Origin: Dimorphilus gyrociliatus
Lineage: Eukaryota > Animalia > Annelida
Length of the DNA: 64,000 bases
Direction: 5' to 3'
Assembly (NCBI GenBank): GCA_904063045.1
Contig: CAJFCJ010000008.1
Location: forward strand, 1,302,001 to 1,366,000
Position numbers and translations under genes: made by a program. Numbering within the stretch: the stretch's first letter is position 1; every line of letters starts with the position of its first letter. Of the stretch, positions 3,501 through 64,000 are shown in pieces. The notes under the pieces are model-generated. The model was not told the DNA's origin, made no database searches, and saw only the letters and a list, made by a program, of their open reading frames with translations.

Positions 3501-4999
3501 AAGAATTCTCGTCTAATAGGCCCAATAATCGGGGCATTTAGCCATGAGCCTATCTTGCAGAAATTTTTTCACGCTTCATCTGGACTTTTACGGATTCGAA
3601 GAATTATTACCAGAGAACTGCTTTATCTAAAAACACCTTTTATCCCCACTTGAATTGACATTATTAATTAGACCACTCTGGAAATGTCTTCGGCACAAAT
3701 ATATACTATATAACTGTCAAGTGGCCTTTCAATTTAGGTAAGATCTATTAGTAACTTTCAATATAGTTGCTTGCTTATTACTTCAAATTAGAAATATTTG
3801 AAAACATACGTATGAAGAGAACGGCATATAAGTTCTCACGTTGAAAATAAAAGGTTCTATTAAACTTGCTAAAGTAAGAAATGTTGAATATATACTGTAT
3901 ATATGACTGCTTTACTTACTATTTTCTTGACAACCTTTTAAAAAGTACTATATGTTTGCTAACAAATTTTCTGTGTAAAATTGGTGCTGTAGAAAAATTT
4001 GTACATAAAAGTTTAAAAAAAGTTGTAAAAAGAAGAGGAAGCAATGAAAATGGAAAAATAATGAGCTTCACACTGATTAAGGTGGGAAGTGTATAAAAGT
4101 AGAATTAGAAATAAGAAAAAGAGATGTAATACTAAAAGAATCATCTCTCAAAGTTATCCTTTGAAATTTGACTGACGAAAATCATAATTGAGAGTTTAAT
4201 TTTACAGTTTTCTTTAAACACTCTTTCATCTGCAGTCATTTTTTATAAGTTTTGCACTTAGAGAAGAGTCAAAATATTTTTGTACTAAAATAAATCTCTT
4301 TGCAATTAGTGCAAAAAAATATTCGTACCTGCGCAGATCTAGTTCTTCAATTTCTAAAGAGCCTGGCTATATGGAAAAAAATTTAGCTAGTTGTAGCTTT
4401 TACAAGATGAGAAATAGTTTAATGAACCTGTTAAGGAATAGATAAATACTTTTGTAACCGAAAAATCAAGTATTTCTTTCGAATATAGAGGCAAAAAAAA
4501 CTGCCAATAAAAAAGGACACTAATCTAAAAGCATCACTTACAGCTGCTTTATTGCTTATCTAAAATCAGTCCATTAGAAAAGGACAAATTTAAAGTTAAG
4601 ATCATATGATTCAAACCATTGTAGAAGCCAAAGCAAACAATCAAATAGAAAGAAGGCGTTTCTAAAGGTGCAGTTGGGTCATAGAGCTGGAAGAGAAATA
4701 CTGAAATTAAATTAGAGAAAGGGAAAAGAAAAAAACAAATTTTCTCTGAATTAATTGAACAAAAAAGGATAAAAAGCTAGCTCTAATAAGTTTGCCTTCA
4801 ATTTCTTTCTTGTTGAAAGCGTTAAATTAAGCGATGTTCAATTGCCTGTTATGTGCTAGCCGGTTGAAGTTAAAACATGCTTTTATCATCAATAAGCAGA
4901 CGAGCGAATCTCGACGGCTTGACGAATAATCCCCGAATGCTGACGGCAAAGTTGTTGTTTAATGGCTTTCGGTCAAATAAAACATTTCTCTCGCCTCTG

Positions 5000-5031
<32 letters not shown>

Positions 5032-8000: not shown

Positions 8001-11000
8001 TAACATAAGATAAGCCAAATTATTCAGTCATATACTCTATCTTATTCTTTAAAAGTACCACATACAATACCACTTAAAGTAATACAATAAGATTCGCATT
8101 AATAAATTAGTATCAACTTATTATAGTCTTTAGGATACTAAATATGGTTTATCTGAGCATAATTCTTCGAGTGGTTGTAGTATATAAAAATTTTTATTTC
8201 ATTTAACTTTAAAATAGAAATTAATTGACAAATAAAAGTAAACTAAACACATCAGTAAACTGACAATTATCAATAAAGCTTCTCTTTTTTCCATTAATAT
8301 AATGATTTAATCATAGAAGAAACCCTAAAATTTTTTAAGATAAAAGATAAAGACGAAAAAGACTATATGGGCAGACTGAAAGTTACTTTTTAAATGTTTA
8401 ATCATTATGGTCAAATACATTGACAGTTGTTAGCCGTCTAATTTTTTGCATCATTAGAGTAATCTAAAACCAATTATTTACTAACAATTTCATAGAATAT
8501 TTTGAAATATCCCAGATTACGTTAATTTCGTTAATATCTCCCTTTATGTAAAGTTTATTTCAAAAGAAATATAGTCTATTATTTCTTTTCTTTTCATCAA
8601 TTCTATTTAAAAGTTATTATCACACATGAAACGTTTTTTAACACGCCGAAAGTATTTTTTATAGTAATAAATTCTAAATGTTAGATTGTTCTCTTTGTCT
8701 AAAATATTATTTCAATATATATTTTTAGGGAAGCAATTTCTTAGAAAAAAAATATTTGTAATCTTTTTATCTATAAAATATAAAAAACATTACAGAATAT
8801 GTAAGCTGTAATTCCTTATATTATTATTTAAATACATATAAAAAATTACTTTATGTTTATCTATATGAAAATATAATCATAATACAGTCGGAATTTGTTT
8901 ATTTTACAAGTTGTATTTATTTATTGTTTATATAGACTTGTAAATATTATCTTTATTCATCAAAAGAATTTTATGCAATCTCTCTATTAGTGATCTGATG
9001 CCTTTGCAGTTTTTTGTACAAAATTCGAAATTCAGTTTCATTTATAGTTGTGTATTAAAAAATCAAGTTTACGTAAAATTCCAGGAGAGAGAAGAAATAT
9101 CGTTATAAATAGTAGTTTGAAGATAGGATTGAGAAGAAATTGGTTGGATTAAGTTTACTGAAGCGAAACGATATTAGGAATAAAAGATTAGTGAAACTTT
9201 GATGATATAAAGATATTTTAGATGCGTAATTTATACAGTATAATAAATGATATTAATCAAAAAATAGTAAGCTATATCATCTGATCATTATTATAAACTG
9301 AATATAAATTTGGAGAGGTAACAATCTTTTTCATAAAGATTATTAAATCAGTCGTCGCTATTTGTAATAATCATTTTCGAATTTTCTAGAGGGCGACTGG
9401 TCATGGATAAAATTTTGTAAGCATTATGTCACGTTCCAACTTGCTAACGGACAATATAGTGCTATCACATGTATTATACCAAAAATCTGCATGATAAAAA
9501 CCAACAAGGCATAAAGATTTCAGAATAATTATAGAATTATCAGTGCTTAAATTTAGTATCTTTGCATCAATGACAATATAATAATAATTTTTTATTGAAT
9601 TATTATTTTATTTAGATACAGAATATATTTTGTTTTGTAAAATAGGCGTCCAATTCAATTATCATACTCCAAGAAAAAAGGGTGACTTCTTAGAAATAAC
9701 AAAGCTTTTATTGATAATATAAAAAAAAGAATTGAGAAATATTCTGGTCCATTCTATTCATACACTTCTTTTCTTTCTTCTCCTTTTATTTTTAGTAAGT
9801 AACGTAATAACTATTCCGCTCTTCAAATATCAATAGTCATACAGCAAACACACTTTAGGATACTTTAGTCCGAAAAAGGTTAATGAAAAAGTATTTTTAT
9901 ATTAATACAAAGTTTTATGAAAAGAGAGAAAAAATGAATTTTTGTGGGCTTTTTATCATGTCTTCTCTTTCGATTGCTTTTTATAATCTTAATAACAATA
10001 GAAAAATTAATTTTGTATTATGTTACATAATGTTTACGAAAAACATATTAAAAATTTCTCTTAATTTTTACAGGTTTTAAAGATGCTTATAATAGTTGTG
10101 GTCCTATTCGCATTTTGTTGGTTGCCACTCCAAACTTACAACTTCTTACAAAGTATTTTTCCTGCTGTTAATAAGTAAGTATTTTTCTCTAACCTATATT
10201 TAGACCAATAATACTTTTAATTAATACAAATAAGATCTTCTTCAATGACACACAAAGATGAAAATTCGATAGAATACAAAAAAGTAACCATTTATATATA
10301 CAGTACAATTGGCGATATTGCAAATATCGAGAAAAGTAGAAAAAATATATATATCTTCTCTTCACCAAAATATTCATTCTAGATTCAACCCAACACTTAT
10401 ATATAACTCAGTTTCATTTATTCTTGCCAAGTAAATGCAATCAAAACGAGTCCGTTCCTAATTCACCGTCTCCATTTTCTCGTCAACTCCAGTTTACATA
10501 ACCAATAAAGGTCAAGGTTAATCTTGTGGAGTCTTAGTAATTTAACAATTCGAAATGAATAGGAAGTTTTTACTTATAAGATAATAAATAGATAGAAATG
10601 TACATAATACATATACAGTATATATATATATATACTCACAATATAACATATAAAAATAATATTATCTCTAAACGAGAATAAGCCAATTTTCAATTGAAAG
10701 CAAAAATACTTTTATTACCCTCTTACGAAATTATCAGTATTCAGAAGAGACTAAATTATATACACACAATAGATCATCTTAAAATATAAGAACATTATAT
10801 AAATATAAAATATAAATATATTTCCGAAGAAAGAGAAATTTTATTAATTAGAAAGAAGGATGTTACATATGAGTAGTATTCTTTACTTATAACTCTAGCT
10901 TAATAATAAATGTGGAATATAATCAAGTAATGTATAGATATTTTAATATAGTTTTATTACTCATAGGTAAAAAATTTTTCATATATAACTCAATATTCAT

Positions 11001-12520: not shown

Positions 12521-13901
12521 GAAGTCAAAAGATCAGTAATAATGAGAGTTAAAATAAAAATTTGAAATTATTATTCCATTACCCCAAAAGAAAGGAAATA
12601 TCATTTCTCTACTGTTATTTAAATGTGTTTCAAGAAGTAATTAATCTGCAGCAAACATGTATAAATATTCTCTTAATTCTATTGTGTGGTTCAACGCTTG
12701 CCCACTACACCCTCTAACTTATGTATGTTTATATGCTGTAAAAAACATATTGTATATATCAATTACATGTATACATGTATCTGTCATAAATAATAATTAT
12801 ATACTTATATTTATTGTTCTTTAAACCTTATATATTCATGTATGAATTAATATTGGGATGCATTATATGCATCTTCTTATTGTGCTATATTTTGGTGTTG
12901 TATAATTATTATTACCTTAACGTTAGTATAATTGTTAAGGGAAGAAGAGCGACCGAGTAGATATTAAACATTGACCTTCTCATACAATCGTTTTAATAAA
13001 TACCACATAGAATTTTTCATAAATAGTGATAATTTGAATATACTGTATATAGTCACACATATTTCATTACAAAAGCGAACATTTTCCTTGTATAAAGCTA
13101 ATGAGACTGTTAATGACAAAAGAAATTGTGAATTTATAATTACTATCGAAGCTTTGCAATCTTACTTCAGGATATATCCAAAAAAACGCGTATAAGATTT
13201 AATGGAATCACGTAAAGTATAGGATATTAGCGTATATAGCTTAGATACAGTATATACAGTATACAGTAATATGCTGTTATAATATACTTATAATATAATG
13301 TATATATGTGTGTTTGCTGGAGATAAAATTCAGACAGCTTATTCTCTCCTATATCGCCAATTGTAACAGTTTTAACATCTCCTTATTTTCCTCTATTATT
13401 TTTACGCATAGAGAAACTGTGTACTTAATTGAAAATAGCGCTTGTTTAAATGGTTATTTTTATCGGGATTATCAATTTTTTTACAATAAATTGTGCAAAG
13501 AAAATATTAATAATCCTGCTATTGTAACTAGCTGTTTTTTTAGACTAGTTTCCCTGTTTTTGGATGTAAAGTGATAACTGGGGGAAGAATCTGCAGATGT
13601 AGTTATGTCATATTAGATGTAAAGGAAAAGTTAATTGAATTACTAAAATTTTGTTAAAAATCTATAGAGTTACGTTTCAACCGGAGGGCTATTTTGCGGC
13701 TCAGAACTGAACCTTTTGAAAGATAGGAAACAAAGAACAAAATTCTTAATACTATTCATATATATTGTAAGCCGGCTTAATGATTTTTTTCGTTATTACA
13801 AGAACATTAATGATTTATAAATTGACGTTTTGCTTGTTGATTTAGTTTTCTAATTTTTTCGCAAAGCTAATCTAACATTTAACTATATCCACTAGATGTC
13901 A

Positions 13902-16931: not shown

Positions 16932-19102
16932 GTACTGGAGTATATACTCTATTCATTTTTTATATACAGCACTATAAATATTTCAGTTTTACTAATTGAA
17001 AAGAGTTTTGATGAACATTCTGTGTATGAATTGAAAAAAGAAATATATAAATATTTTAATAATTAAAAGTAAATGATGGATTTTTCAATCTTTTCTAACT
17101 AATATCATTTATCACTTTCTTTCTCTGACCTTTTAGAAAAAAGAATAGAGTCGATAGGTTTTTCTTTTTACGCTTTTTTCTTTCGTATATTACAATTTTT
17201 TGAAGGTATAAACAAAAAATATGATTTATGTCTTTTTTTTAACTTTCCTCATGTTCTTTCTTAACTTCTTTCCTATTTGGAGCATGAATAATTTTGACTT
17301 GTATTTCTTCTTTCTGTATTGTTTTACAGAATTTAACACGTTACTCAACTGCTTTTTTTAATGTGTTTTCATATTGAAAAGGATATTTTGTAATTTTAAC
17401 ACGTTTTAAAGAAAAATCAAATCAAATTTCTACATTTAAAGGTAAATATGTTAGTTCTTTCTATCCAATTTCAATTTTGGTCTTAGCACATTTTTTCTTA
17501 ACTCTGTGTAAAAAAATCACGTTCAAGGACTAAAGTATTATTGTAATAAATTATAGAGAAACTACGTAAAGAATCATCAGCAGTTTCCTTTTACTAATAA
17601 TAGTTTCAGACAGGCTTCGCTTCTACTTAAATAAGTACTTGAAGAAGATTTTTCATACACAAAAATGATTAGGAGACTAAATGATTACCAAACTGGAAAA
17701 AAATTTTACACTAAAGATTCATTGCAAAATCAATATCTTATTCCTTTTATATCTATGTAACAAAAAGTATATCTAATATAAAAAAATTTAAATAGAAAAT
17801 ACTATTTTATATGCAAAGATGCGTAATTAAATTAAGCTTAAATCTATAAAATCTATAAATATCATTTGTAATTTAATTATCGGTATAACATATAAAAATA
17901 GACAATAAATAGTATACAATAGACTCTTAACACTTATTTAAATTACTCTTTCAAAGCATTACAACTAGAAAAGAAATGGAAATAATATCTTACTTATAAT
18001 TAAAAATTTAAGAGAATAAATGGTAGAAAAAGAAACAATACATAATAAAATGAAATTTATATTCAAACAAAAAGTTGCTTCAATATATAAATAATTAAAT
18101 AAGTATTGCTTATGTATCCTATCTAAGCTATGAATAGTATTCGAATCAATCTTTGATATATTGTCTTCTGTTAGTTTATTTTTTTTTAAGTATTTAAGTA
18201 TCTCATTGAAAATCTATTATTATTCTTTTTACTTTTCAAGTATTTCATTTAAACTTATGACAAGACACTAGTTTAAGCCAATAATAAAAATATATACGTT
18301 ATATAAGTCATATACAGTATATAGCTTTTGAGAAAATTGTCTAATATATATAAATATAACTGAGTATTTTAAGCACTACTAGAACTTTGGTGATGTGATA
18401 AAAGTTTAAAATGATTTTCCTGTTTGTACGGATTATTTAACAAATGCATAATCATTATAACATATTCATGTGGAAAATTATCATCTATTAGAAAGTTAAA
18501 AGAGCGAACTGCAAATGTAGACAATGTATATTTCCAGTGTATAGCTTACTTTAAATCTTTTACGTAAAATGCATGTAAAGTTTCTTTCCCCATCTGGAAT
18601 TATTTAGTTATTATCTATTATACTAATATATATATATGTATGTATTCGACTTGTATAAAGTACGAGTGACAAGTTCAACATTAGTTTATATTAAAATTTG
18701 AATATTCTGAATATTTTTTTATTGAGACTCGGATCAGTTTAAACAGTAATATATGAAATTTGAATGAACACTCTAACCTTAGTTTAATAATAGCAATGAT
18801 ATATGCTTATACAAATAACAATTCTTTTTCTTACCAATATCAGAAAAAGACTTATTATATTTGTTATATTAATCTCCCAGCGTAAAATGAAGAAAAAATA
18901 TGATTGTACTCAATGTTAATATATATAATTAATATACATTGAAAACTTCTCCTTCTTATCTTAATCCCTGAACATCTCGGAAGTATTAACAATAAGGCTA
19001 CAGCCGTCTTTCGTCTCACACTTATATCATTGGTTAAAAAAGGGCACGTGATACGCATTATGTAAACCGAGCAAAATTTCTGTTTTGCAGTTCGACAGTC
19101 GA

Positions 19103-28090: not shown

Positions 28091-28112
28091 CTCATAACAT
28101 TCACTACCGAAA

Positions 28113-42500: not shown

Positions 42501-45500
42501 AGTTTGTTTGTACAGGAATACCTCGTCGAACATATAAAATACAAATGAATGGATTAAGAGAACTTACTTAAGTAGCGTGTCAATAAGGACGTTAAAAAGG
42601 GACCAGAAGAATGATACAAACGAGAGATGACAAAAGTGAATCGATTAATAACAAATTCGAGGGGACATTAGGAAAATTAGCAATGAATATTAACCTGGGA
42701 TAAAAAGCTCCTATGCAGACAAGATAGCCTTTCTCTTTCTCAGCCAATATATTACATTTGTCTAAAATTATAAAAATCTTATGGCCATTTATATATTTAT
42801 ATATTTAGGTGTAAAATATGTGTGTTATGTTTTTTACAAGTATATATAAATATATTGTTACGTGCGTTTTATATATATAGCATATATAAATATAAGAATA
42901 TAAGAGGGAAAGAGGAAAATCGATGAAGAGAATTTACCGACACCCATCGCTTTTTACATTTATAAGAAAACGGTTTGTCCGTTGTCCACAGTCCGAATAG
43001 ATAAAGGTCAATTCGTTCGTTAAACCATTTTGCCGCTTCTTTCCTTACGCTCGCGCTCGGCCCCCCTAACATCCTTCAAGCATCACTAAACCGGAAATTT
43101 AGGAAGTAAGAGGAGAAAAATTATTTTGATTATCAAATACAATCATCAAACAAGAATTTGACATTGCTTAAGTGCTTTAGTTAACAAAATACTTAAGGTT
43201 GTTTCCAGGTTTCGATGCTTGTGACTCATCTTTTCTCCTCTCCTTTCTCTTTTACAATTCAATTCGACAATTCTCCTCAAGTATCGATTTATTTAGATTT
43301 TATTTAAAGATTCTCGACTGTATCTTTCTTGTCCTCCTACCCTTAATTGGTTAATGCTAACCGTTAAAATGATTATGATACTTTCTCTTCCTCTTATTCT
43401 TTAAAGACGAAAGAATCGCATTAAGATGTCAAGCCTCCCCAGGATCTGTTTTCGACATAAATTTCATTTTGGTGCGTTAATTCTAGGCATTCGAAATGGA
43501 TTGATTTTTTTCTCTCTTTTTCTATCTATAAATCATAAGAAATCTGTATAAAGGGACCTTTTACATGTTGCACTTATTTCACATAAATTACATTATATTA
43601 ATAAGAGATAATGTTGCAAGACTTGCGGCAAAAATAGCAAAGTATCAATTGTACCCTTACAGCTTTATAGCATGTTAAGACTGAACATATCTTCTCTTAA
43701 GACTATCTTTTGAGCATTGTCAAAAAGCTCTCAATATTTTCCATGGTTAATTATACTAGTAGTACCTATAAGAAAAGCTTTCTTAATTAATATTGATTCT
43801 TTTTAGGTATAAATCTTGAAAAGAATAACAAATACATATTTTCATTTACCATATAGGTTTGGTATACTATGCTTAAGGTATACCTTATTATAGTATAACA
43901 TATATTATAATAAATGTATTATACTGATCCTACTTTATCCATCACGTTGCAAACAACTATTATTCCATGTAACTTTTAAACATATATTTACTGTTCGAAA
44001 CATTTTTCTCTTATATTTATGAATGCCTAGAAATCATTTAACTTCTTGTCATATACATTAACCTAATAAATCCACTTTGGCACGAATGGTCGACTTTTAA
44101 GTATATAGGAAATATACAAATGTTAAAAAGGCTTTATTTCGGTACTTTGCCCTAATTTTTAAGCGATTTACTAGTTATTTGTTCTTTTTCTTATATTTTT
44201 TATAATTATTTTTAATATCACTCGATAATAAACTTATAAATTTCTTCTATCTTTTGATTAATGAAAGATTTTTCTTTCTTGTCATATTTCCTTTCCCAAA
44301 GCCTTAGTTAACGTGTATGAATTATTAAACATGTCTATTCATTCATACTTGCATACTATTAGCACAATTTAGGTTTATTTTATAATGATGTATGATATAC
44401 GATTATTAATCATAATAAATATTGACCAGTAAAATAACATCAACATGCTTTTAGTCTCATTGGAAGAACGTCACTCTATTCCTTCAAGTGTTTTAAAGTT
44501 ATTGAATAAGAAAACCCAAAAACTCTACAAAAAGTAGACATTTTTACTGGAAAATTTTTTATTATCAACAGTTAATGAAATAAATTACAATAAAGAAAAT
44601 GAGAAGCTAATTTGTCTTCATTTAATTATATTTACGCTTTATCCATACCAATAAATTTAAGCATATTTAAGACTTTCATTATCTCAGTTTCCTTAATAAT
44701 AGATAAACGACAATATCAGTAGAAAAAGGAAGGAAAGAAGAATGAATTGATTACCTAAAAAATACCATATTATTTATACTCGATTTAGCATTGAAAAAAT
44801 TTCCTGCTAAACACAAAATTCTATCGGCGTAAAGCTCGTTTTTCAAAGTAAACTTAATAAAATCCACATGTTTGAGTAATGTTACAACAACGTAGTAAAG
44901 TAAACGAAATGAACTAAATTCAATTTTTTCCACAATCTATCCGCCTTGTTTGCTCCCCCTCCTTATTGCAGTCTTCGAATAGAATCTATATAAATATACG
45001 AAGAAAACGCAAGAAACACAGTGGGAAGCTTGGTTAAGAAAAAATGGGAGAAAAAAATTAAAAAATGGCTTTATAGAAGAAGTACCAAACTAAGCATATG
45101 TACGTATGCTAGTGTATATACTGTATACAAAATATTGTTTATAAACAAATACGTATTATAAATATACATATATGAATGTATATAAAGTGTATAGAGGAAA
45201 TGAATAATTTCATCGTATCCTTATCCCAATCATACTGAGTTGTATAGAAATCATTTTTTTATCCCTGTCCTTTACATCTGGTCACGTTTTTCAGCCTATG
45301 CTCTATTCTTTCTTTATGAAAGTTTTTCCTTTTTTATCACAAGATCCTACCCAGAAGCGGAAGAGATCGAATTCTGTGCCCCGAGTATTATAGAGAGAGG
45401 ATATAACCGGTACTATCTGGTACTGATGGATTTTGGAACAAATAATCATTATATAACAATAAACGAAGTATTAGCTTTGTTGTTATTATTCGCTTTCGTG

Positions 45501-47669
45501 TCTTACGTTGTCTTTCCTTCCCTCTTATACTTTTGCTTATAAACGCAAATTTTATGAAGAATGTCTTATTAACCATTCAATCGACAGTAATGACTTTTGG
45601 TGTCCTTCAGAGTGAAATACTCAAATAATAAATCCTAAAGGATAAGGTTACGTCGCAAGCAAGAGAAATTAGCTAGCTAATTGAATAATCCTTTCAGACA
45701 TGCTCGACAGCAAGGCTTTTATTCAATATCCAGGAAAAAATTCCCTCCAGTAGAGCATTTTAACTGGCATCTGGTTTAGGTAAAATATTCATCTTCCTCT
45801 GCCCCCTAACATAGATTAGGTCATTCCGATATCAAACGTTCTTTCGGGCATCGATTCCCAATCGGTTAGATAAATATACCGTAGACGGGAGTAATTGCTA
45901 TCAAAATTACATTAATTACGCAATAAACATGGCAATCTAATCTTACTAATAGTAAAGTTGAATAGGCGATAGATTGCGGCAAAATATTCAGATCACGCTA
46001 GCGGTCGTAGGAAGGGGTTGAGTAGGCTTTTTGCTTGTCACTAATTTCCTGCTAATTACAACTCTAGGCCCTTAGCGACGTGTCTGCAATTTTACCACTG
46101 AAATTTTCTTCGTCGCCTCTTATTACTGGCTTCGAACAAAAGAGAAGAAACCTTGAAGAAAACTAATTTCTTATCCAACACATTCGTTCTCTCCTAATTA
46201 TTACATGACTATAGCTGGAAAAAAGCATTGTCTTTTATCCTCTCAAAAAAGTCTGACAAAAATAGAAAACTAAATTTCCCCACTTTTCTATTGTTTCCCC
46301 ATTATAAAACAGTTTTTTTCAGAATAGTTAAAATATTCTTTAGCCTAATTCAAATAATAACCAATATTTCCAGGAAAATCTTTATTAAAAGAATTTAATC
46401 TATGATGAAAGCGATAAATATTTGAAAGAAAAATTGTATCTTAACGCTGGAATAGTTTCAGTTCCCTTTTTTATATAAAAGAGGTTACCGTGACAAATAA
46501 AGCCATAAAGAGAAGAAATATTCTAGGGTCAAGCGGAAAGGGATAGATTAAAAAGCTTATAATATAACATCTTTAAGAATACTATATCCCTTATCAAATT
46601 TAAAATACGTGTAAGTCGAAAAGAAAATTAACAATCATTCTCTGTTTCGTTTATCTTTTATAAATATTATATATAAAGGATATATATACATATATATATT
46701 TATACTGTATATATACAAACTATATAAATGGCTTTTTTTAACCGCTCACAGAAATGTACTCAATACATCTATGTAAAGAATTATAAAATAGTTTTTTATT
46801 TATTTTAGCAGCTATATTGTTTTAAAAACAACAGAAAAGCACAGAAATATCAATAATCAATAACTATTAAATATATATATATATATCTAAGAACACATGT
46901 TGAATTTATCACAATATTTTTTAATATATAAATTTTTTACTTTAATAGCTAGTGTAATAAATTTACTGCAGATGTTTATTAAGAAAGTTTCTCTTTGCTT
47001 TCAAAGAAGTTTCTCTCTCTTTCTAATACTCAGTAAAACTGAAAACTGCAACTAAGAATACTCTTACATAAAAGTACAGTTTTGATAATAGAAAAAAGTT
47101 GTTTAATACATAAGAATCGACCTCCTGTCTTCTTACCTTAGATAGAATTAACTATTTCTTTTTGTTGTAATTATAGAATGTATGCTTCATTAAATTTTTA
47201 AAAAAGAAATAATCTATTTCGTCTCAAATACATCCGACATTTTTCTTGTAAAAAGGATGCAGCTGTCTTTAATGTTGCATTTTTATTTTCAACTTTTTTA
47301 TTTCTTTAACTTACTTCTTTTCTAATTAAAATTGATGGTGCCATCTATTTGTTAAAATTAAACTGTGTAATAGTTGTGAAATATTTTCGTAATCAAACCT
47401 AGCTTCGATACAAACTGTGAAATGAATAGAAATTTCGCAGGGTTTTAGAATTCTATTATGTTACTTTATCAAGTTCGTATCACAATCAGGTTATAAGAAT
47501 CTCATTATTTCGAAATCTAACGAGAAAGGTTATTTTACTTGAGTATTTAAGTATTTTTCCATTATTTAGTATATTTTGAAACATGCAGATGGCGCATTAT
47601 TTTCTTTCATATTATATGTTGCCATCTATGTTATCAGATCATTCTTGACCAGCTTGTCCCAGCTTTACT

Positions 47670-50736: not shown

Positions 50737-52190
50737 GATTCTGCCGCACCTTTTGCTGCTCTTAGCACGAAGTAGTAAAATTTTGTGTCTGGGGGCGCCA
50801 CTTTTAATAGGAAATTTCAATACTTATTTCATATTCGTGGTTACGGTATTGAAATTTTTGATGAATCAAAGGTGTAGTTCATATTTTAAAAAATAATATA
50901 ATTTAAAATCGTTTTCATCAAAATTATATTAATGTTATCTTTTCATTCTTTCTTTTTAAATACATGTGATTGACATTGACATCTTCTGTTTTTATTAAGT
51001 GAAAAGTTTTGAATAAACTTCTTATGTTTGCTCGTAAAAAAGACTCACAAAATTACACACTCACGTAAGATGTACATGTATATACCTTTTGTCCTCATTA
51101 TTATATTCAATAAATCAAACTAAATTAAATGAACCAATTAGACATTTAAATTAATACTGTATAATTTTATTTTTTAGTCTTCAATCCAATTTGAATATTT
51201 CAACTTTGTTATTTATTCTTTTGCAGTGATATTTCTTTGTTTTAATTGAATATAAAGTGTATGCAATAGAACAATAGGATTAATATAAAAAGAGATGTTT
51301 CGGGGAAAATGAAGGAAATCTCACCTTCTTTCTCTCTTGCTTCTTCCTGATTATCTATATTATATTTCAAAAATTAAATTTTTGTTAAAAAAATTTTAAA
51401 AGTTTAATCGAAAATTTTCGAACAAATTATAATTAGCAAACTCAATAATAATACAAACGATTGATCTTCCGTATACTATTATATAGCACTTGTAGTTGCA
51501 AATAAATAAAAAAAATAAGAAATAAAAAAATCAAATACCATTTTTAAGCTTTTATATAAAATTGTGGCACTGTTACACACTAGATGCCACTAGTGGCACC
51601 TGTTATTAGAATTATTGTTATTGTGAAAGAAAATTTTTCTCCATGTCTAGTTCTTGGCTCTTACAAAAGTTAAACATCCAATAAAACAGTGATAAAATTC
51701 CAGAGGAAGATAAAATCTTCCTTAAGTTAATAAAAAAATAAGCCATTTTATGGATAAATTTCCTTCACAGATTGATTGTGTCTATTTAACAGCAACTAAT
51801 ATTTAAAGGTTATTCTTTGCCGGATGAAAGCTGAAGAAGTTTACCAGGTGTTACTAGGCCTATGCCCTTGAATTATACTGTATATACAAGCAAAATAAGG
51901 TATATATATATATATATTTATGGAGATGATAAGATATTTTCCCCTTCAGAATAATATCTGTACTGAACAGACACTTATTGCAAGTCTAAGTCAATATCTG
52001 TAGCAAGATAGCAAATTATAGATTGAAGAGATGAATGATTCTCTTTTCTTTAAAAAGCGAAAAGAACTTAAAACCAGTTATCATATCTGATGAACCACAA
52101 AAGTTATTCATAATCTTTTTAAAACATTAGTGTCGTCTAGCAAGTGTATTTATATATATATATATATATATACTAATATATATATATATA

Positions 52191-55100
52191 TTATACAGTG
52201 GTTAGTTTATCTACTTCTTCATAGTCAATTTCTTCTTGACGATATCGACTGTCGCTTAGTTTATCTAGATTTTTATTTCTTCTTTGCCCAAAGTTTCGAC
52301 TTTTATTTGTTGCATAAGCAAATATATCTAAACATAGCTGCAAAACTTCGAAGATGGTCATAACTGATATTCCAATCCATAAACCTATTGAAAGATAAAA
52401 TCACAGTTATATCCAGGAAAACACGTATATAAAAGTACAATAAATGAGATTAAGCGTAACTATTCTAACTGGATTAGTAAAATTACTATACTTCCATTAA
52501 TTATTGTTTATGTTCTATATAAACAATAAAATATAGAGAATTCCATTTAGTATATCATTTACTATAAAAAATAATAAAAACTCTGAAAGAACAAAAATAA
52601 ATAAATATCTAATGGTATTTATATAAAGTAAGTTTGTACGTCATGGAAACACTTTTAAAAATAGATTTGTCAAGACTTTCTTAATTTATTCAACCATAAT
52701 AAGATTTACAACTTTACCAAGCTAATGTTAGAAATATCAAGAGAAAGGTGCCTAAAAGTAAGCTTATTGAATTATTTGAATTCAGAATAAAGTTAACTCT
52801 TTTTTCCTTTTATTTTTATTACAAGTTGGCTTTTTTCGATTCAATTGAATATTTCAGGCTGGAAAAATATAAGGCAATTAAAAAGCTGCAAATGCAGACT
52901 AACATTTCAAAGTACCTTGAGGAAAGAATACTTTCTTTCGAAAAAGAATAGATAAGAGCAGAGGAAAGAAAATTTCCTTTTTAAATAAATCGTAAAAGAA
53001 ATATTTGCGTCATATTTATAAAATAAAATTTTAATTGAATCATTTTTCTAGCAAACAAGAGCAAATTTCTTTTAATAATATGTTTTCAAATGAAAAAACA
53101 CATCTTGTTTACTTCAGCTGATGGTAAACCAGTATCTAAATAGAAACTGTCGTTTCGTCATGCGTGTTTGTCACCAGTAATATACCTCCTTAATTACAAC
53201 CAACTATTTCTTTCCATATAATATTCGGTTGATTTACTTACTACTAAATTCGATATAAGTCCATATATTTTTTTACATAAATAGCTTAGGTTATCAACTG
53301 TGAAAGCAATAAATGAAATATATTTTGCCTGATTGTAAATATTTTCTGTATCCTTTCTCCACGTATTGAGAAAAGTATATATCATTGTGATCCAAATAAC
53401 ATATTATGTCCTGTTTTGCATACAATCTTATTGTTTCCATTTTAGAAGAGAGTATACACCAATTTTGAGAGACTCTTTATTTCTCACCTAATTATTATTA
53501 CTCATAGAGAGCTTTAAAAGCTCTTTTTGTACATGTTCTTAAATTACTAATACTCCCTAAATTTACCTTATTTGCTTTTTGTCCCAGATTTGAGGTATTT
53601 TTTTTGTCAGCTGCTTATCATGGCTGCTAGTGTTTAACTAATTATGACTATATATTCAATTATTTATAATTATTTAACCATATGACGTGGGAAAATATGC
53701 TCTATAGTGTGAATAGGCTACATATATTTTCCTAGTATTCTTTCTGAGATATAGAATAGTTATGTTCTAAGGAAATTATGCAATAGATGTAACTTAAACC
53801 ATTAATGCGATATTGCATATAATTTAATTCAATAGGTATGCATTTAAAAAAGAGTTTTCAATATATACTAACCTAACTGACCTCCAATATCAGATATTAA
53901 TCGAATTGCTTCATAATCAGGAGATTCTACAGTTCTAATCACGTTTGAATCGGCAATGTAAATTGTAATCCTGGTAAAGTACTTATCGGCTACATACTTC
54001 AAATATTGTTCTGAAATTGTACGATTCTTTGAATCTTGCACACTTGAGTTAGCGTAAGCCGATACATCATCAACCTTGAGATGTTCTTCAACTTTTTCTT
54101 TTATAATTCTCTTCTTATCATAAGGTAATTTGGTGTTAATAAAATCATCAACTTTTGAAAAGAAGAGAGTATTGTCTGCTGATTTTGGTGGAAACATTGA
54201 TATAGAATAGCTGGCATCATAGAGGATGTCTGCACACGGGGGATAACATTGGCAAGAATCAATTGCGTCTGGATCCTGAAAATTTTAGTTCAATTGAAGT
54301 AAAGGAAAGAACGTTTGTTTCGTATCTTGTGCCCTACTACAACTAAAAGGAGGAACCAAAATGTACTCCTAAATTAAATTTAGCATTCTATAAAGAATAT
54401 ACAGTGTAAATTTATATATACAGTATATATTATTATACAATATATATATACTGTCTATGTGTGTTAATATATATTTGAATATATATATATATATATACAG
54501 AATAAATATAGCATAAAAGAATAATATTCACAACTTTATAAGGTTTATTACTCCTCATTTAACATTCTACAGGCGAAATCTTTAACAGTTGGCTTCTGAT
54601 TTCTGCTTTTTCTAGGTTTTCCTTAAAAAGTGGACTACACTATTTTTGTAGATATTTTTAATCTTAAAATTTAAAAGAAAAAATAGCTATACACCGAATT
54701 TGAAAATAGAATACAGCTAAAGATGATCATTAAACCAAATTTTTGTTACAACTATTGATTTTTTCGTAAACTAATTTAATAAGAATTCTTTTTAGCCCCT
54801 TAGAATTTACATAATTGCTGGAAAAAGCTTCTTAAAATGCTGTTTTAAGATAAAACTTAATGGTTCATTCTTTTAAATTTTTGGTTGTAGAAGAGCGTTT
54901 TTTCCTTTATAAACTTCATACGTACTTTTATAGTCATATTATGATAAACATCCGTTACGCACTGTAAACGACTATACCAAGAGTTTATTATCTCATGACA
55001 ATCGTCCTCAATTGTCATCATCTTAGCTATTGTTACATTGGAACAATGCGGCCTATTCAACCACTCAGAGGGAAGTTGATAGCAAAAGGGTAATTTAGAA

Positions 55101-58100
55101 GTATTGGAATGCGGTAGGCTATTATCAACGCACTCACATTTCTCCATTATCCTCTTTTGTATACATTCGTTTTGGCAGGATAAAAGTGTATATTTTTTAA
55201 TTCTTGCTGTCTCATCTGTACAATTACCCCATGGATGAGATATTCTAACATTTTCTCTAGCCTTAACTCCTATTCGCACAGTAAGGCCAGGCGAAGCATC
55301 GAAACCTTCAGCTTCTGGATGTGCAGTTGTTCCAGGAGCATGTACAACTACTCGTGCACCTGTCAAAGATAGATTTATATTAGTTTTGAAATATAGTGAC
55401 CCCAGTGGTAATATAGAATATGGAATGTTGTGTGTTTTAGTTGTTGGGAAGTTAAGTCATATTGACAGAAGTAAATAGAAATTGGTAATATTTGCCAGAG
55501 AGATATTATCAAATTCGGAAAAGCTAAATTATAGAGAGAAACCGTTAAGTATTGAAAAAGAGACCATTAAATGCTATTAACAGCGGGTTGTAGTTGTTAG
55601 AAAAACTAAACAAGCATCTTCAACAGCTCTGCTTAATGTATTTTTTATACACCCAATCACGTGAGATGTTTCGGAGAAGTACTTTTAGCCTAGCAAATTA
55701 TTTGATCATTTATATAATATCAGAATAAAAAATTCATTTCTAGAATTGAATGATTAATATGGGACCTTGTTTTTTAACTTTAAGGATAATAGAACGTTTA
55801 ATTCACATTAAGACTTATTTAACATCTTATTAACTTTATCAAGCACTGCCAAGCCCTGTTCTGTTAAAATAGGTCGAAACATAATCGCTTAATTTGCTTC
55901 TTAGTCGACCATTTAACAAATTAAACTTTTATTCCGGCCTGTCGAATTTAATTTCATTTACAAAATAAGCGAAAAGAATAGAATTTAAGCTACGGGCAAA
56001 CTTAAATAATTTTGAGACAAAAAACTTTGGTGTTATACATGTTTCACTTTCATCAAGCAATTATCTATTCTTAATGGATATTGCTATTAATTGTATATGG
56101 TCTCTACAACAGTAAAAAATTTATAACAAACGCCTTACTAATCAAGGGAAAGGAAAGAGAAAAGAAATTCTTAGAAATCTGTATATTTCGCGTGAAATAT
56201 ATACTAGAACAGCGCACAATTTATCAGAAACGGATGTTATTTGATCAACACAATTGGTATTTTGGTGAAAACGTGTCGTTACCCTATTTTTCCTTTTCGA
56301 CCATTTTTGACTATACAAATATATTTATTTAAGGAAGAGAAACAGAGGGAAATAATTCGGTTGTTAGTAATTTTAAACTTGTTGAAAAGAGAAAATAGAA
56401 AATAAAAGTTTACCGATCTTCTAGGAATAGAATACTATTATCAAATTTATTGTGGCACATATCATGGTCGTAGGAGAATAATCATATCATTAAATATTAA
56501 AATTCGTCAATAGTTTTATTTAAAGGAATATTAATACAATAAATTGAGTTGTAGGTGGGTGAATACAGAAATAAATACTATACTTGATGATGAACAAAAG
56601 AAAAGAGCCTCATTGCATACGTCTCAGGTTGCACTCATTTATGATAAATGAAGCTTTGCAGTTTTTTTATTGGTTTATTTTCTGTATGGAATCTATTGCA
56701 TCATCAATAGTTGAGCTCCAACTTTGATTATGCACAAACTATTCCTCTCTAAATGCACTATATTAGTTTGCATTACAATATACAGTATATATTAAACTAT
56801 TTATTATGCATTTTAAATCTTTAGCTACAGCATACTTTCTTATTTATATCATTGATTACTCATATTTGTTTTTAAAATTATTCTATAAAAATTGAATTTC
56901 GAAGTTCTTATATATCTAAATATGAAAGAAATACATTTCATTCAATTGATTACCGATAGTTCCTTTTTGTTAAAACATTTTCAGTTATTTTTTAGCACAT
57001 GTGGCCTTGTGCAGTATAATATAGAAGGTGCATAAATTATACACAGTAATTATAGTAAAAAACTATTCTACATAGAGATAATAAATAGTTTCATTAGTTA
57101 AATAGCATTGAGATGAAATTCAAACTCTCTATAAGATTCTGTACTTTTTCCGTTCAGATAAATGGTTACATAATCAAAGAGTAGCAACTAATTTTCACTA
57201 ATAATCAATAAACAAATATGTGATAAATGATATTCCAATAAGCTGTTACATTGTGATGTATATTCTGAAACAACTAATTTTTAATCGACTTGTGCGATTA
57301 GTCATTAATTACATGTATTTTATAGATATAACCTAAATTTAGTTGTTCATTCCTGTACAATGGGTTTATATCTATTAATTTGAAAAGTTATATATAGCAA
57401 ATTTCATCAGGGAATTATTATATTGTACAGTCAAAATAATCCTAAAGAAAAGGACAAGACAAAGAAAAGAGTTATTGTAATTATTATTTGGTTGAGTCAA
57501 CTAAATGACATTTGGAGGCTGAGATATTATTCATTATATTCGTCTTGGGTCCATCATCATAGGAAATATACGTTTTATACAAACAATATTTATATACAGT
57601 ATATACTGTATATATGTTTATACATATTGTGTATAAGCATCATCGTCATCAGGACCGTTTCCCTTATTCCCTCAACTTAATATTTGTAAACGTTTATTGC
57701 GAGCGACGCTAAGCCTAAACAAGCTTTAGGAAGATAAACGTTCTTTACCGACAAAATGTGTGCTGAAAAGTTTCATCCGGTCAGTTTGAAGGATAGTCGA
57801 AGCATTAACTAAAGTAAGAGTTTATTATACTCTAAATACCATGTTATTTCGAAAAATAAAAGAACTCTACTCGTTCGGCTTATTCTAGTGTTATACTGGG
57901 ACCTATTAAAGAATTTATTAATTAACGTAATTAAAAAAACTAATCTGAAAAGATGGAAAATTTAATTAGACTACTTTTCTAGTGTTTGAGCGTTATTGAT
58001 GCAAAATTATATATTATAATTGAATAATATTCTTATATAATATCTAATAATTAAAATTTATAAAACAATACAATATATAGTCAAAAGAATATCATATATT

Positions 58101-59927: not shown

Positions 59928-61457
59928 CGTATCATTATTATAAAGAAACAAAACAGTTTTAATCCGAAAGTCTATTTAGAAAACAACGATATTTTTGTCT
60001 ACCGCAGAAGGCACATTTAATTTTTGTAAGCTCCACTCGCTTTGGCTGCAAAAACTGTTCTAAGCAACCACAATCAAGATGGCCGACTAAGTTTTTCTTT
60101 GCAGTTGCGCTCCACTATACATCTTTAACAAAAGTAACGCAGTAGTATATTCAAACAGACTTTAAACTTTTCTGCTTAATTACTATTCTTGAAGCAGGTG
60201 TTATACGCTTTGAAAATTTAATAAAGACTCTTAATTTTTATAAATAACGTCATCGAACACGTGTTATGATTCAGATGTGGTTTTTTATCACTTGTTTCCA
60301 TTTTTTTAATTATTCATTAATGATCATAAACAAAATTTCACTTTATACACATCCAAAATTACTGGAAAGTCTTATTGGTCGTTAAAGATGTCTATGTAAC
60401 AATTGTTTCTCCAGCGTAAACAAAGAAAACAAGTACCAATTCTAAAATGGGACACAAATCTAATGGTAATCTGGTTGACAGTTAATTATCCTTTTTGTAA
60501 TTTTTACGAATAATTAATCAAGAATAAATTGTAACAAGTATTAAAAACTAGAAGAGAGGTGATAAGGTAGAATATTACACAAGACGTATTAAACTTATAA
60601 ATTTGCAATCTAACCTCTCTTAAAATAAAATTAAACTGAACAGAATGCCTAAAAGACAGTTATCATTTGGAAAATAATGTCTATCACCTTATTGTTTAAC
60701 TTAGAGAGATAAAACTATTTAACAGCTAAAAGATTTTCAAACAATTAAACTTTACTAATTTAATTTATCTTTCCTTTACCCTCTTAAGGTTAAAACCAAA
60801 AAAGCCGTAGAGGTCTATTTCTATTAATGGCTTCTCCTAGCTTTACTGACGTCTTTGTGAGAGGTTAAAAGCTGTAGAGTGTCAATGAGTTAGCCTCCAA
60901 TACACAGTTCCGATTAATAATATTTTCCTTTTTATTTACAAAGATAGCTTGTCTAAAATTAAAATACACATCTATAAAATGTTTTATGACAACGAATTAC
61001 ATTCAAAGAATAAGCTAAAAAAAACGGCAAAGATGCAGTAAAAAGTGCACACTTTTGTAAAGGAAAACAATTCCTAATTATAAAGCACAGTTTGTTTAAA
61101 CAAAAAACACTTCTCTGAAGAATCTGTACACATGACGAGTAGTTGTAACGAAAGTAATCGAGTTTAGATTTCTAGTTCAAGTAAAAAACAAGTTCAGTAG
61201 AAAATGTAAAAAATAATAAAATAAAAAATTTCTTATGCTCCTATTTCAAGACTGTGCCAATTTTTAAATAATAATCTTTTGTTTGGAAAGTCAATACGTC
61301 TCTTTTTTTCAAGGAACATCCAATGTTTTACTTTCAAAGCAGGAAGTTGTAAAAGATATCTCACCTACCCTATAGAACATTAATATGTTTTTTTTTATAT
61401 ACGAAGCAGAAAATACCTCTAAAATTATGACCAAATAGTAATAAAATCCACGTATTT

Positions 61458-61469
61458 ACTTCCGGAAGT
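61458..61469. promoter_or_regulatory. Perfect palindromic double ETS-type site ACTTCCGGAAGT upstream of the DEG/ENaC gene
   Basis: 12-bp palindrome with the CCGGAAGT ETS consensus on both strands; function is unverified. Confidence 0.3.
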
Positions 61470-64000
61470 GGAACTTTGTGTTTGATTTTGTTAAGTAATG
61501 GAATAAAGAAATTTGCCCGTTTCGTAATAAAAATTGATTATTTCTACTTGGGATTAAAAGTTCTCATTCCCTCTTATTGATCAAAAAACAATAGAATAAG
61601 ATAAGGAAATCTGACCTTGAGTAAGAAGTAAATGATGTTAGAAAGAAAAAGACAGTTCTAGTAAAATGTTCGTCTTAAGAAAGGCGTCAAGTTTTTATTT
61701 CCGGAACATGTTTATAAATAAAAAACACTGCCACCTTGACATTGAAGGACGCCCTATATTTGCTTCATCCACAGCGATTTGATATTTCTTCTCTGAGTAA
61801 CATATTCCTAGAGTAGTTATCCTAACATGGACAAATGAATCCGGTTAGTTTGTTATTATACTTGAAATTTCTCTTTTCTGATTATTGTGAGCGATGCTAA
61901 AATGTAAATTTGATGATAAAAAATTGAGAAACATACTCTTATGGAACTTTGGGTAAAGGATTAAGTAGTTGAATTTATACTAGGTCTATTTCCGAAGGCA
62001 CTTTAGACCTTTTCCTGTTTTTATATCGTCGTACTTTACTTGCTGAATACAATTAGCTTCGTCAACTTTTCTTAATGATGTCTCTTGAAGGCAAATATTT
62101 TAAAGAAAGTACACGTACATTGTAGTCAATGTAATAACATATGCAGTTTGATGGATAAATAAATGTTATTATCGACGAATAAAGCTAAAGCGTAAAAAGG
62201 CGAAGGTCTAATGGGAATCATGATTAATGACCGACTTTCACATTAACCGCTTTAGATGTATTGTCCTTGAGAAAATATAGTTTTCGCTATATAAAATGAA
62301 ATTATAATAAATAGTAAAAAAGAAAAAGAATAACAGAAAATTCTTCATAGCTTTCATATTTTCGATCTATTATTGTTAAAAATTTAATAAAAAATGGCAT
62401 GTTTTCCGCAAAGATGTTTTTCGCCTTCTTCCTAAATGAAGTAAAATTTCTCAAAATAGATTCTTAAAACTATTTTAAAAGTAATAAACTTACTAAAAGA
62501 GTATACTCTTTTTTATTATTTATGCACTGGTTTGTTTTAAAGATTTAGTAAGGGCAATGGACTGCAATCTGTCCAGTAAAATAGCTAAAAAAACATCTAT
62601 GCCTTATAGTTTTTGAATGTTTACTATATCATGTCATAGAATTATTATTTTATTTTACACTTTTCATTTCTTCCCTTGATGGAATTTTGATAACCGGAAA
62701 TCATAATAATGTCTACAATGATGATAAATAGTAAAAGGAAATTTATATAGTATAAATTTATATATATATACAATATATACAGTATATATATACTATAGAT
62801 GCTATTAAAATAAACTATTTTAAACTTATTCATATAATATTCTACGTGAACTATACCTTCTTTTTCTTTTAGCATGTTGAGAACTATGTTTTGTTGGCAA
62901 AATCATAATTATACTCTGAATTTGGGAATTTAGACTATTTTTTCCCCCTTTGAAAATTGTGTTTCGCTAATCCCAGAAGTCTTTTAATATTCCGCTCCAT
63001 AAAATATCGTACCTTCTTAGTAAAAAGAGGAAGGCGTTAGTGTTTTTTATATCTTTCTGCTTGATTCATGTTCTCAACTATTTTGAGTAAGTTTAGAGGC
63101 TCCGTTTAAATACATCTATAAAAGTGTTATTAATTGTCAAACATATACAGTATATATATAATATTGTATGTAAAAATAATGATATTCGGAAGGAAAAGTA
63201 AGATGTATAAGATGTCAAACTAAACGTAATGATAGCCTCTGTGAATATTTCTTATCCCATAAATCCTTTATACAAATACAAAATGAATATAAGGCAAGCA
63301 AAAATGATTTTCAATAGTTGTGGGTAATAATTTCATACAAAAATGGTATGTATTCATAAAATTTTTATTTTTATATATGAGTATATATCGTATGTATATA
63401 TATATGTTAGTATATGCAGTATATATATATATATATAAATATAATTTATGAACTAGCTCACAGAGTATAAAGATATATAAAGCTAATATATAATTATATT
63501 AATATTTTATTTAATTTCTATGTTTATATCAATCTAAGAGCACATTTGTTTAAGACTTTAATTAATAAACGCCAACATCTTTTCTTTGATTAATTAGAGA
63601 TATATAAAAGTCTCTTCTTTGTTTCTGTTTTTATAGGAATCCCTTTTTCCTGTAATTGTATGCTTCCATTGTAGAATTTGACGTTCCGGGAAAACTATTT
63701 TTTATGAGAATATGGAAACAAATCGAAAAAAAAATTAACATGGGATTACAGATATATATAGCATATATATATATATAGTATATACATTTATATTAATAAT
63801 GTATTATGACTTTCAGATTTTATATTATCTTATATATATATATATATATATATATATTCTGTATATTTGCATTAGTATACTCCTGAGAAAAAACAATCTG
63901 AGGAATGTTTTGCTTGATTGCTGTCTATTCAACAAAAATTTATTGACAAAATTCGATAAATTATTTTACTTCAAAAGATTCTGCTATGACAACGAAAAAT

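Follow-up and report, generated by a model that had tools for sequence, protein, structure and literature searches.

Palindromes of the form TATA-C(A/T)G-TATA in the genome of the annelid Dimorphilus gyrociliatus may well be footprints left by the excision of a Tc1-like (Sleeping Beauty-type) transposon; judging from the sequence patterns described below, we put the probability of this reading at about 0.55. The canonical excision footprint of Sleeping Beauty (SB) consists of TA, CAG or CTG, and a second TA, giving TACAGTA or TACTGTA (10.1101/659086), and the annelid core TACWGTA (W, A or T) matches it exactly. Mass Tc1/mariner excision had already been proposed in the initial annotation of this DNA. 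The sequence of the motif, its excess, its nature as an insertion, its target context and the absence of a positional relation to genes all speak for that proposal, whereas the confinement of the excess to TA runs speaks against it.

A palindrome is the most over-represented word of the window

Across the window (the whole 64-kb stretch of DNA that was analyzed), ATAC(A/T)GTAT is the top over-represented word, microsatellite words aside. Its copy number had been estimated at about 23; we counted 24 exact matches. In 100 shuffles that preserved dinucleotides the mean was 1.37 and the highest count 5, and the order-5 Markov expectation is 5.96. From the 23 core starts listed in the initial annotation, 22 proved exact, while 56783 was off by two (the correct position is 56781) and a core at 30189 had been overlooked. 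The fuller unit is the palindrome TATA-C(A/T)G-TATA with a single central base, which measures 11-15 bp in its perfect form and shows sharp information content over 11-13 bp. In the form TATACWGTATA it was observed 21 times versus 0.5-1.3 expected (order-5 Markov, 1.32), and the 7-mer TACWGTA occurs in 38 copies versus 10.1 expected. Binomial and Poisson p-values for the excess range from 2e-8 to 2e-24. The sites are listed below without strand; a restored run is the (TA)n run obtained when C(A/T)GTA is deleted.

3892..3900: ATACTGTAT, TA flanks on both sides, restored (TA)5
9233..9241: ATACAGTAT, restored (TA)3
10613..10621: ATACAGTAT, bordering a (TA)8 run, restored (TA)9
13040..13048: ATACTGTAT, 865 bp 3' of a C1q-domain gene
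13245..13268: three abutting copies (cores 13246, 13255 and 13262), either several insertions in one TA tract or slippage
16137..16145: ATACAGTAT, restored (TA)5
18312..18320: ATACAGTAT, restored (TA)4
25602..25610: ATACAGTAT, midway along a long TA tract of 9 + 6 units, restored (TA)14
25914..25931: TACAGTTTACTGTA, two half-copies back to back, forming a micro-palindrome with CAG..CTG ends between TAs
29502..29510: ATACAGTAT, 50-75 bp past the end of RNA contigs and 343 bp downstream of the Mab-21 stop codon, in an intergenic spacer between convergent genes
29692..29700: ATACAGTAT, shares the untranscribed spacer between convergent genes with 29502..29510
30188..30196: ATACAGTAT, without TA-run flanks; may be a chance occurrence
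39578..39586: ATACTGTAT, 73 bp 3' of a sulfotransferase stop codon, adjoining a (GT)n run
39645..39653: ATACAGTAT, restored (TA)7, with a one-mismatch copy at 39633
45118..45126: ATACTGTAT, restored (TA)4
46702..46710: ATACTGTAT, 968 bp 5' of a CRAL_TRIO gene
51154..51162: ATACTGTAT, 418 bp 5' of a claudin gene, single TA flank
51875..51883: ATACTGTAT, restored (TA)4
54398..54504: cluster in a 576-bp intron of an ASC channel gene, with a perfect copy at 54417-54427 and four one-mismatch copies at 54398, 54434, 54447 and 54494
56780..56788: ATACAGTAT, exact match, core 56781
57594..57611: two copies with one T in common, one A-centred and the other T-centred
62744..62786: perfect copy at 62776-62786 and one-mismatch copies at 62744 and 62767, the mismatches being of the C>T / G>A type
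63145..63153: ATACAGTAT, restored (TA)6
63413..63423: TATGCAGTATA, one-mismatch copy at a TA-run edge
63855..63865: TATTCTGTATA, one-mismatch copy where a long TA run ends

The excess belongs to one particular three-nucleotide block. Among ATA-NNN-TAT words, CAG/CTG is the most frequent class (24/167) and stands above every class made up of A and T alone, and it accounts for 21 of the 56 TATA-NNN-TATA words. The next class in the latter set, CAA/TTG, has five copies and is a one-step decay product of CAG. A check against control words, suggested along with the original proposal, gave 4 for the ATACTCTAT class and 2 for the ATAGACTAT class, compared with 24 for CAG/CTG.

TA-rich DNA of low complexity inflates the counts of many words, and for the bare 7-mer TACWGTA the order-5 Markov expectation is already 30, which is the ground on which the motif might be put down to composition, or else to an assembly or polishing artefact in such DNA. 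We consider the likelihood of this to be negligible: at the same order the 11-mer TATACWGTATA stands at 21 versus 1.3, G-first mirror-image controls are flat in TA context, and the sites recur in independently sequenced DNA. For the interval 25500-31499 we compared runs X1 (likely the source DNA), X2 and X3 (both RNA) and X7 (C-to-T converted DNA). Contigs of X7, an independent library from 2024, span 29503 and 29693 without gaps, and the motif sequence is therefore not an assembly artefact. Across the same interval, no indel variants and no empty or filled alleles were seen in the same-project DNA, RNA and converted-DNA runs. Sites 29693 and 30189 showed neither indels nor informative loose ends in these runs, and the loose ends found at 29500-29536 derive from other TA-rich loci.

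The unit is an odd-length insertion into TA runs

Viewed within (TA)n, the unit is a 5-bp insertion of odd length, whose three-nucleotide block shifts the TA phase. An origin from (TA)n through substitutions was considered and rejected, because the phase shift demands an indel of odd length. Deleting C(A/T)GTA yields 20 uninterrupted (TA)n runs with n of at least 4, compared with 57 intact runs of that length. The share of TA runs that are interrupted is thus ~25% when n is at least 4, 3% at n=3 and <1% at n=2, and it does not rise with run length past n=4 (small numbers), a point against the footprint reading. The interrupted TA is an interior one in 7 of the 8 restored (TA)4 runs, and removal of CWGTA restores ATATATAT exactly in 15 of the 38 TACWGTA cores. 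A palindrome of the ATATATAT type with a central TA is the preferred target of SB, ZB and Bari (PMC8934666, PMC7913693).

The sites had been described as lying in many cases inside or beside (TA)n, and the flanks confirm it: 21 of the 38 TACWGTA cores have TA on both sides (<0.7 expected) and 10 on one side (2-6.5 expected). At ordinary TAs without TA flanks TACWGTA shows no excess (7 versus 8-15 expected), and the preference for TA runs over isolated TAs is more than 100-fold. If the palindromes are footprints, this requires an element with an unusually strict preference for TA runs. Such confinement is much stricter than the target choice of wild-type SB; for SB100X, ATATATAT represents only 2-3% of the insertions of the wild type, and up to 39% in mutants such as K248R (PMC8934666). 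The TA flanks are also longer than those of background runs, with a probability of extension from two to at least three units of 0.46-0.69 versus 0.22-0.30, which points to insertion into pre-existing TA tracts and not to a bare 11-mer. Clustering of the sites by local hopping was examined and rejected: they are no more clustered than the TA-rich targets themselves.

The strict link with (TA)n of at least four units, the flat relation between interruption rate and run length, and a product that remains a perfect hairpin-forming palindrome would also suit a mutation of (TA)n in which no transposon takes part. Breakage of a cruciform or hairpin, followed by stereotyped repair or a template switch, would add CWG, and the interrupted tracts would persist since interruptions stabilise microsatellites. 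We judge such an origin distinctly unlikely. Templated insertions copy neighbouring sequence, which in this case is TA only, and CAG/CTG is the sole enriched three-nucleotide block, with CAA/TTG as its decay product. Nor are we aware of a repair process by which a constant CAG/CTG would be added.

Central base and decayed copies

The central base of the 9-mer is exclusively A or T: ATACSGTAT (S, C or G) is absent from the window, and the shorter TACSGTA occurs 5 times versus 38 for TACWGTA. CpG depletion as the cause of the absent C/G centre was rejected; at a CpG o/e of 0.86 in the window, CpG loss does not account for an A/T-only centre. Such a centre is the exact prediction of the A-A mismatch model of excision. 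According to this model, a Tc1-like element would integrate at a TA within a ATATATAT-like tract, with duplication of the TA. On excision, the transposase would cut three bases inside each 5' end, and the flanks would retain TA with a CAG 3' overhang. End joining would then proceed by C-G pairing across an A-A mismatch, which repair or replication would settle as TACAGTA or TACTGTA, so that the net outcome would be a 5-bp CWGTA insertion in a former TA run. In non-coding DNA the CWGTA scar would be near-neutral; it may drift to fixation and subsequently decay by point mutation. We infer that the responsible element was Tc1-like and of the SB type.

Copies with one mismatch are consistent with this last step. 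Their mismatches are mainly C>T/G>A changes affecting the two G:C positions (8/24), as expected for neutral decay, and the ratio of perfect to one-mismatch copies suggests a scar age of roughly 0.05-0.1 substitutions per site. Some non-canonical SB footprint words (TACTA/TAGTA, TACGTA and TACATA/TATGTA) are also mildly raised in TA context, 2.5-4-fold and with small counts (13 versus 5 expected for the TATACTATA class, 7 versus 2-3 expected for ATACGTAT). The G-first mirror controls are flat, and TACATA also arises via (TA)n transitions.

Position relative to genes and the possibility of a binding site

No copy of ATACWGTAT lies inside a called CDS, in agreement with the initial description of all sites as non-coding, as far as annotation reached. 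One 7-mer TACWGTA (27669) is located inside a GPCR exon, which is at chance level. The 3' flanks hold approximately 12 sites and the 5' flanks approximately 11; one site is intronic, and three fall within the untranscribed spacer between convergent genes. Distances to CDS ends extend from 73 to >4000 bp on the 5' and 3' sides alike. We detected no fixed distance, position or orientation bias relative to gene starts or ends in the window, parts of which are incompletely annotated.

Copies of TATAC(A/T)GTATA might instead be functional sites of a dimeric sequence-specific protein and be kept intact by selection; candidates include boundary, termination and chromatin factors and DNA-binding proteins derived from a transposase. 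This is possible, although in our estimate rather unlikely. The motif has the makings of such a site, being a perfect palindrome around a single central base with information concentrated in 11-13 bp, and its 21 perfect copies compare with no more than 5 for any one-mismatch variant. Its excess is tied to one exact flank context and its density amounts to about two per gene. Homotypic clusters occur locally, as in the unusually long ASC channel intron with five copies in 110 bp; regulatory introns of D. gyrociliatus are larger than other introns according to the published genome analysis (PMC7854359). Several copies lie 70-540 bp downstream of stop codons. These features have to be weighed against the lack of a constant distance or orientation to gene ends, the three copies in the untranscribed convergent spacer, and TA-run flanks that are longer than a bare motif requires. 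The top ATAC motif named in the genome analysis is CTCF, and the available part of that analysis contains no mention of the TATAC(A/T)GTATA palindrome (PMC7854359).

If the motif were a protein-binding site, its identity with the canonical Tc1/SB footprint, in the preferred target, would have to be a coincidence. To our knowledge, no animal factor has a motif that matches the palindrome, and where the word turns up in the literature, it belongs to LexA boxes of bacteria or to primers. Searches for the motif return SOS papers because the bacterial LexA (SOS) box has the same half-sites, CTGTATA/TATACAG. That box is bound by a repressor, its halves are separated by 8 bp of AT spacer, and it has no bearing on an annelid nuclear genome; the resemblance is only a coincidence of letters. 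It is the near-absolute restriction to TA runs that keeps the binding-site explanation alive.

Transposons in the window and in the genome

No resident Tc1-like or CAG-ended element was found in the 64-kb window. In a Pfam scan, the ten long frames outside called genes yielded a GPCR exon, a C1q domain and collagen, and no transposase. The only dispersed or inverted repeat families in the window are low-complexity TA-rich ones, and a literature search returned nothing tying Dimorphilus to Tc1 termini or footprints. Two CAG..CTG micro-palindromes are present, at 25916 and 5160.

Some Tc1/pogo-type ends start with CAGTAT, and these micro-palindromes could be taken as a sign that the motif words are not empty sites at all and represent the terminal bases (TA + CAGTATA...) of unrecognised short repeat or MITE copies. 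This seems highly improbable. Beyond ~4 bp on either side of the motif there is no similarity between sites, information content being at background, and the sites are not embedded in any longer repeat, inverted repeat or MITE. CAG..CTG ends that lie within 6 kb of each other and are complementary as inverted repeats are TA-rich chance pairs alone, and apart from such pairs no CAG-ended inverted repeats in the window reach 17/24 matches.

The genome as a whole (74 Mb) is known to be poor in transposons (4.87%). The published analysis assigns 0.85% of the assembly to Mariner-superfamily elements and reports MITEs with matching inverted repeats (PMC7854359). That about a quarter of the (TA)n tracts with n of at least 4 are interrupted, yet such elements make up <1% of the genome, counts against the footprint reading, which consequently requires many excisions per surviving copy. 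The initial annotation had gone further and read the motif as a scar left by the loss of transposons while the genome became compact. This exceeds what the data say: the genome still contains elements of the superfamily, and footprints count excisions, normally followed by re-insertion elsewhere, and not net loss.

The strict sequence context and the high rate at TA tracts would be easier to explain by a host-directed process than by random drift of rare events. We therefore mention the speculative and very unlikely idea that the palindromes are the product or the target of a host-directed, sequence-specific process and not passive scars. In one version they may be junctions left where a transposase, resident or domesticated, systematically removed Tc1-like elements, the removal of TA-inserted elements possibly being developmental or germline-programmed; in the other, tens of thousands of putative sites may serve a transposase-derived protein. 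Our estimate covers the two versions jointly.

Comparison with known systems

The footprint of SB and related Tc1-like elements has the same 7 bp, the same A/T centre and the same net 5-bp insertion at TA as the annelid motif, and the restored annelid target is the ATATATAT-type palindrome of SB, ZB and Bari. In contrast, the annelid motif is known only as putative fixed genomic scars without a donor element, its density reaches ~25% of (TA)n tracts with n of at least 4, and it is confined to TA runs far more strictly than the footprint of wild-type SB.

Mariner/Stowaway scars in rice were found, in numbers of tens, by aligning Asian and African rice genomes, and natural Mariner excisions there are mostly messy, with 8 of 94 perfect (PMC4423477). 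They resemble the putative annelid scars in being naturally fixed in non-coding DNA near genes and in the TA-targeting cut-and-paste elements involved, whereas the annelid scar is uniform and so frequent that it heads the over-represented words of its window. The messiness of the rice excisions counts against reading the annelid motif as footprints. Internal eliminated sequences of ciliates are bounded by TA, have a Tc1/mariner-like end consensus and are removed in very large numbers. Their excision is developmental and depends on a domesticated enzyme of the piggyBac type; it is precise, and a single TA remains with no CWG scar. TA flanks, CAG-like ends and mass removal would be common to both systems if the annelid palindromes are scars, while precise developmental excision sets the ciliate sequences apart from the annelid palindrome, which retains CWG.

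Implications

If the palindrome were a binding site, it would rank among the most abundant unassigned cis-elements of the D. gyrociliatus genome. If an active purge took place, it would have helped to hold a 74-Mb genome nearly transposon-free. If the palindromes are excision scars, the density in the window, scaled to 74 Mb, would mean that tens of thousands of former cut-and-paste events can still be read from the sequence, and past DNA-transposon activity would have been far above what the surviving copies suggest. Excisions could then be counted and dated without a sister genome, and the interruptions of TA microsatellites would stem in large part from transposon traffic. The compactness of small animal genomes would, in that case, owe something to elements that keep moving and rarely persist in gene-dense DNA.

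Over-representation of a TA-flanked palindrome

The window covers positions 1302001-1366000 of contig CAJFCJ010000008.1 in assembly GCA_904063045.1, with a G+C content of 23-33%. The 9-mer ATACWGTAT (W = A or T) occurs 24 times in it, whereas dinucleotide-preserving shuffles yield 1.37 on average and never more than 5; its core, TACWGTA, is present in 38 copies where 10.1 are expected. CAG/CTG, with its 24 copies, tops the 32 reverse-complement classes of ATA-NNN-TAT and exceeds all classes built of A and T only, and two control words named in the initial annotation have 4 and 2 copies. In an unbiased k-mer scan (Markov orders 3 and 5), words tiling TATACWGTATA showed the strongest over-representation after pure (TA)n and (GA)n. 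This 11-mer was found 21 times (0.45 expected at order 3, 1.32 at order 5) and the 13-mer ATATACWGTATAT 15 times (0.08-0.32 expected); CAG/CTG accounts for 21 of the 56 TATA-NNN-TATA words (binomial p ~2e-24). The excess is greater than TA-richness provides. Of the 23 coordinates in the initial annotation, 22 were exact and one was shifted by two, and the site at 30189 was absent from it.

Information content is limited to the 7-bp core and about four bases per side (consensus TATA-TAC(A/T)GTA-TATA), and the flanks further out are unrelated. The centre of the 38 cores is A in 22 and T in 16, with no significant strand bias (16 A vs 8 T among the 9-mers, p = 0.15). C- or G-centred versions amount to five bare 7-mers and none within the ATA..TAT context; CpG loss is ruled out as the cause by a CpG o/e of 0.86. 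Derivation from (TA)n through substitutions is likewise ruled out: the three-base CWG block shifts the TA phase, so the word needs an odd-length indel. The motif sites in the window were not found to be embedded in a longer repeat, in paired inverted repeats or in a MITE. A less likely but real rival reading is that the motif is the site of a dimeric DNA-binding protein, since such a site would also look like a perfect palindrome of 11-15 bp, locally clustered at times. The published ATAC analysis gives CTCF as its top motif and, in the text available, leaves this word unmentioned (PMC7854359).

Two micro-palindromes with TA-CAG...CTG-TA ends, at 25916-25929 (14 bp) and 5160-5198 (39 bp), could be nearly wholly deleted elements or chance.

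Interruption of TA runs

Removing CWGTA from each core restores an uninterrupted TA run.

Table. Restored TA runs
TA units (n): sites
1: 7
2: 7
3: 4
4: 8
5: 5
6: 2
7: 2
8: 1
9: 1
14: 1

Set against the intact runs of the window (135 with n = 3, 26 with n = 4, 14 with n = 5 and 17 with n of at least 6), these counts place a CWG block in about one quarter of ancestral tracts of at least four units, 3% of (TA)3 and <1% of (TA)2. In 7 of the 8 restored (TA)4 runs, the TA that was hit is an interior one.

Table. Cores by TA flanks
Flanks: observed; expected
Both sides: 21; <0.7
One side: 10; 2-6.5
Neither side: 7; 8-15

Genomic position of the sites

Gene context was taken from called genes and Pfam hits:

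506-877, plus strand, GPCR exon
13905-15043, minus strand, C1q/collagen-type secreted protein gene (C1q-domain exon after a collagen-repeat exon)
26950-27985, plus strand, GPCR
28113-29159, plus strand, Mab-21-like gene
30504-33045, minus strand, Ly6/QVR gene
36652-39505, plus strand, sulfotransferase
47670-48605, plus strand, CRAL_TRIO gene
49248-50736, minus strand, claudin
53868-55567, minus strand, ASC channel
58734-59951, minus strand, further ASC exon

About 12 sites lie on the 3' side of the nearest CDS, about 11 on the 5' side and one in an intron, at distances from 73 bp to >4 kb, and their clustering is not above that of TA-rich targets. In one 576-bp intron of the ASC gene, a perfect copy and four copies with a single mismatch lie inside 110 bp. 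On the plus strand, contigs of two RNA runs (X2, X3) stop at 29428-29453, and those of the minus-strand gene begin at 30887; sites 29503, 29693 and 30189 therefore fall in the untranscribed spacer of convergent genes.

An X3 contig of 2269 nt (26940-29428; X2 similar) spans the GPCR, a 220-bp intron (27440-27659), a 127-bp gap and the whole Mab-21-like gene. Read-through or a transcript common to both genes may explain it, a two-gene contig being no proof of one RNA; the Dimorphilus genome paper excludes operons (PMC7854359). Within the called sulfotransferase range, a 750-bp AG-rich degenerate tract (36420-37176; AGAGAGACAAAGTC-like units, 8-14-bp period) gives a strong plus-strand skew of G over C and A over T. 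Two stretches of 8-9 kb (39505-47669 and 18113-26949) carry no called gene, against a genome-wide average of one per 5 kb. RNA contigs of low depth lie at 25643-26969. The long open frames in these stretches (19052-19510 and 45204-45539) had no Pfam hit.

Comparison with sequencing runs

Contigs of X1, the likely source run, match the compared stretch (25500-31499) exactly, and sites 29503 and 29693 are crossed gap-free by contigs of X7, a 2024 run from another study. No indel alleles were seen among the runs compared with this stretch. Many further X1 contigs align to 29500-29536 only, with alignments that begin just ahead of the CAG, which suggests other genomic loci built alike. X7 carries wholesale C>T/G>A changes like bisulfite-type data: nearly all Cs (251 places) are read as T, or Gs (329 places) as A, including 27988-28213, and X7 is therefore bisulfite- or enzyme-converted DNA. 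The gene-dense stretch looks essentially unmethylated.

Excision footprints as the probable source of the motif

In the standard model of Sleeping Beauty (SB), staggered cuts give the donor flanks overhangs of 3 bases, and repair yields the 7-bp footprints TACAGTA or TACTGTA, differing solely in the fourth base (bioRxiv 10.1101/659086). The preferred target of the Tc1/mariner-type transposons SB, ZB and Bari is the palindrome ATATATAT with a central TA (PMC8934666, PMC7913693). All but one of the directly testable predictions of this model agree with the window: the word matches letter for letter and has a W-only centre; it is an indel, and its removal restores the target; the hit TA has an interior position; and the sites are indifferent to gene features. 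We read the TA-run palindromes, by pattern matching, as probable Tc1/SB-type excision footprints (probability roughly 0.55), which is the best available reading and a specific one. Six shorter non-canonical SB footprints are known (TACATA, TATGTA, TACTA, TAGTA, TACGTA and TATA; 10.1101/659086); here, non-canonical words with no substitution route are mildly co-enriched (TATACTATA class, 13 vs 5; ATACGTAT, 7 vs 2-3), and G-first mirror controls are flat. One-mismatch copies (24 vs 21 perfect), the largest class being C>T/G>A at the two G:C positions, suggest scars of moderate age, crudely 0.05-0.1 substitutions per site.

The exception is that scars are predicted at ordinary TAs too; here the excess does not extend beyond TA runs, implying a target preference of >100-fold. 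ATATATAT receives just 2-3% of wild-type SB100X insertions in human cells, and mutants such as K248R reach 39%, with 43-fold TA-repeat enrichment (PMC8934666); strict TA-run specificity is thus possible, yet assumed here. A TA-tract process independent of transposons is improbable as the source of the motif, and minor rivals and unlisted explanations share the remaining probability. A hit rate of about one quarter among the longer TA tracts calls for many excisions for each element that survives, which we infer to be arithmetically possible in a fast-breeding, inbreeding worm. Natural Mariner excisions in rice are mostly messy (PMC4423477), and messy scars would escape a k-mer count.

According to the genome paper and its supplement (PMC7854359), transposable elements make up 4.87% of the D. 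gyrociliatus genome, the Mariner superfamily 0.85% of the assembly and MITEs with matching inverted repeats 0.08%, and copies are either old or very recent. The footprint interpretation of the initial annotation fits the pattern; its mass loss of transposons during compaction, with no intact element left in the window, is not supported as stated, because scars count excisions rather than net loss and the superfamily persists in the genome. Our literature search found no paper tying Dimorphilus to footprints and no description of the word in an animal genome. We file the motif as a new, unusually dense case of a known scar type.
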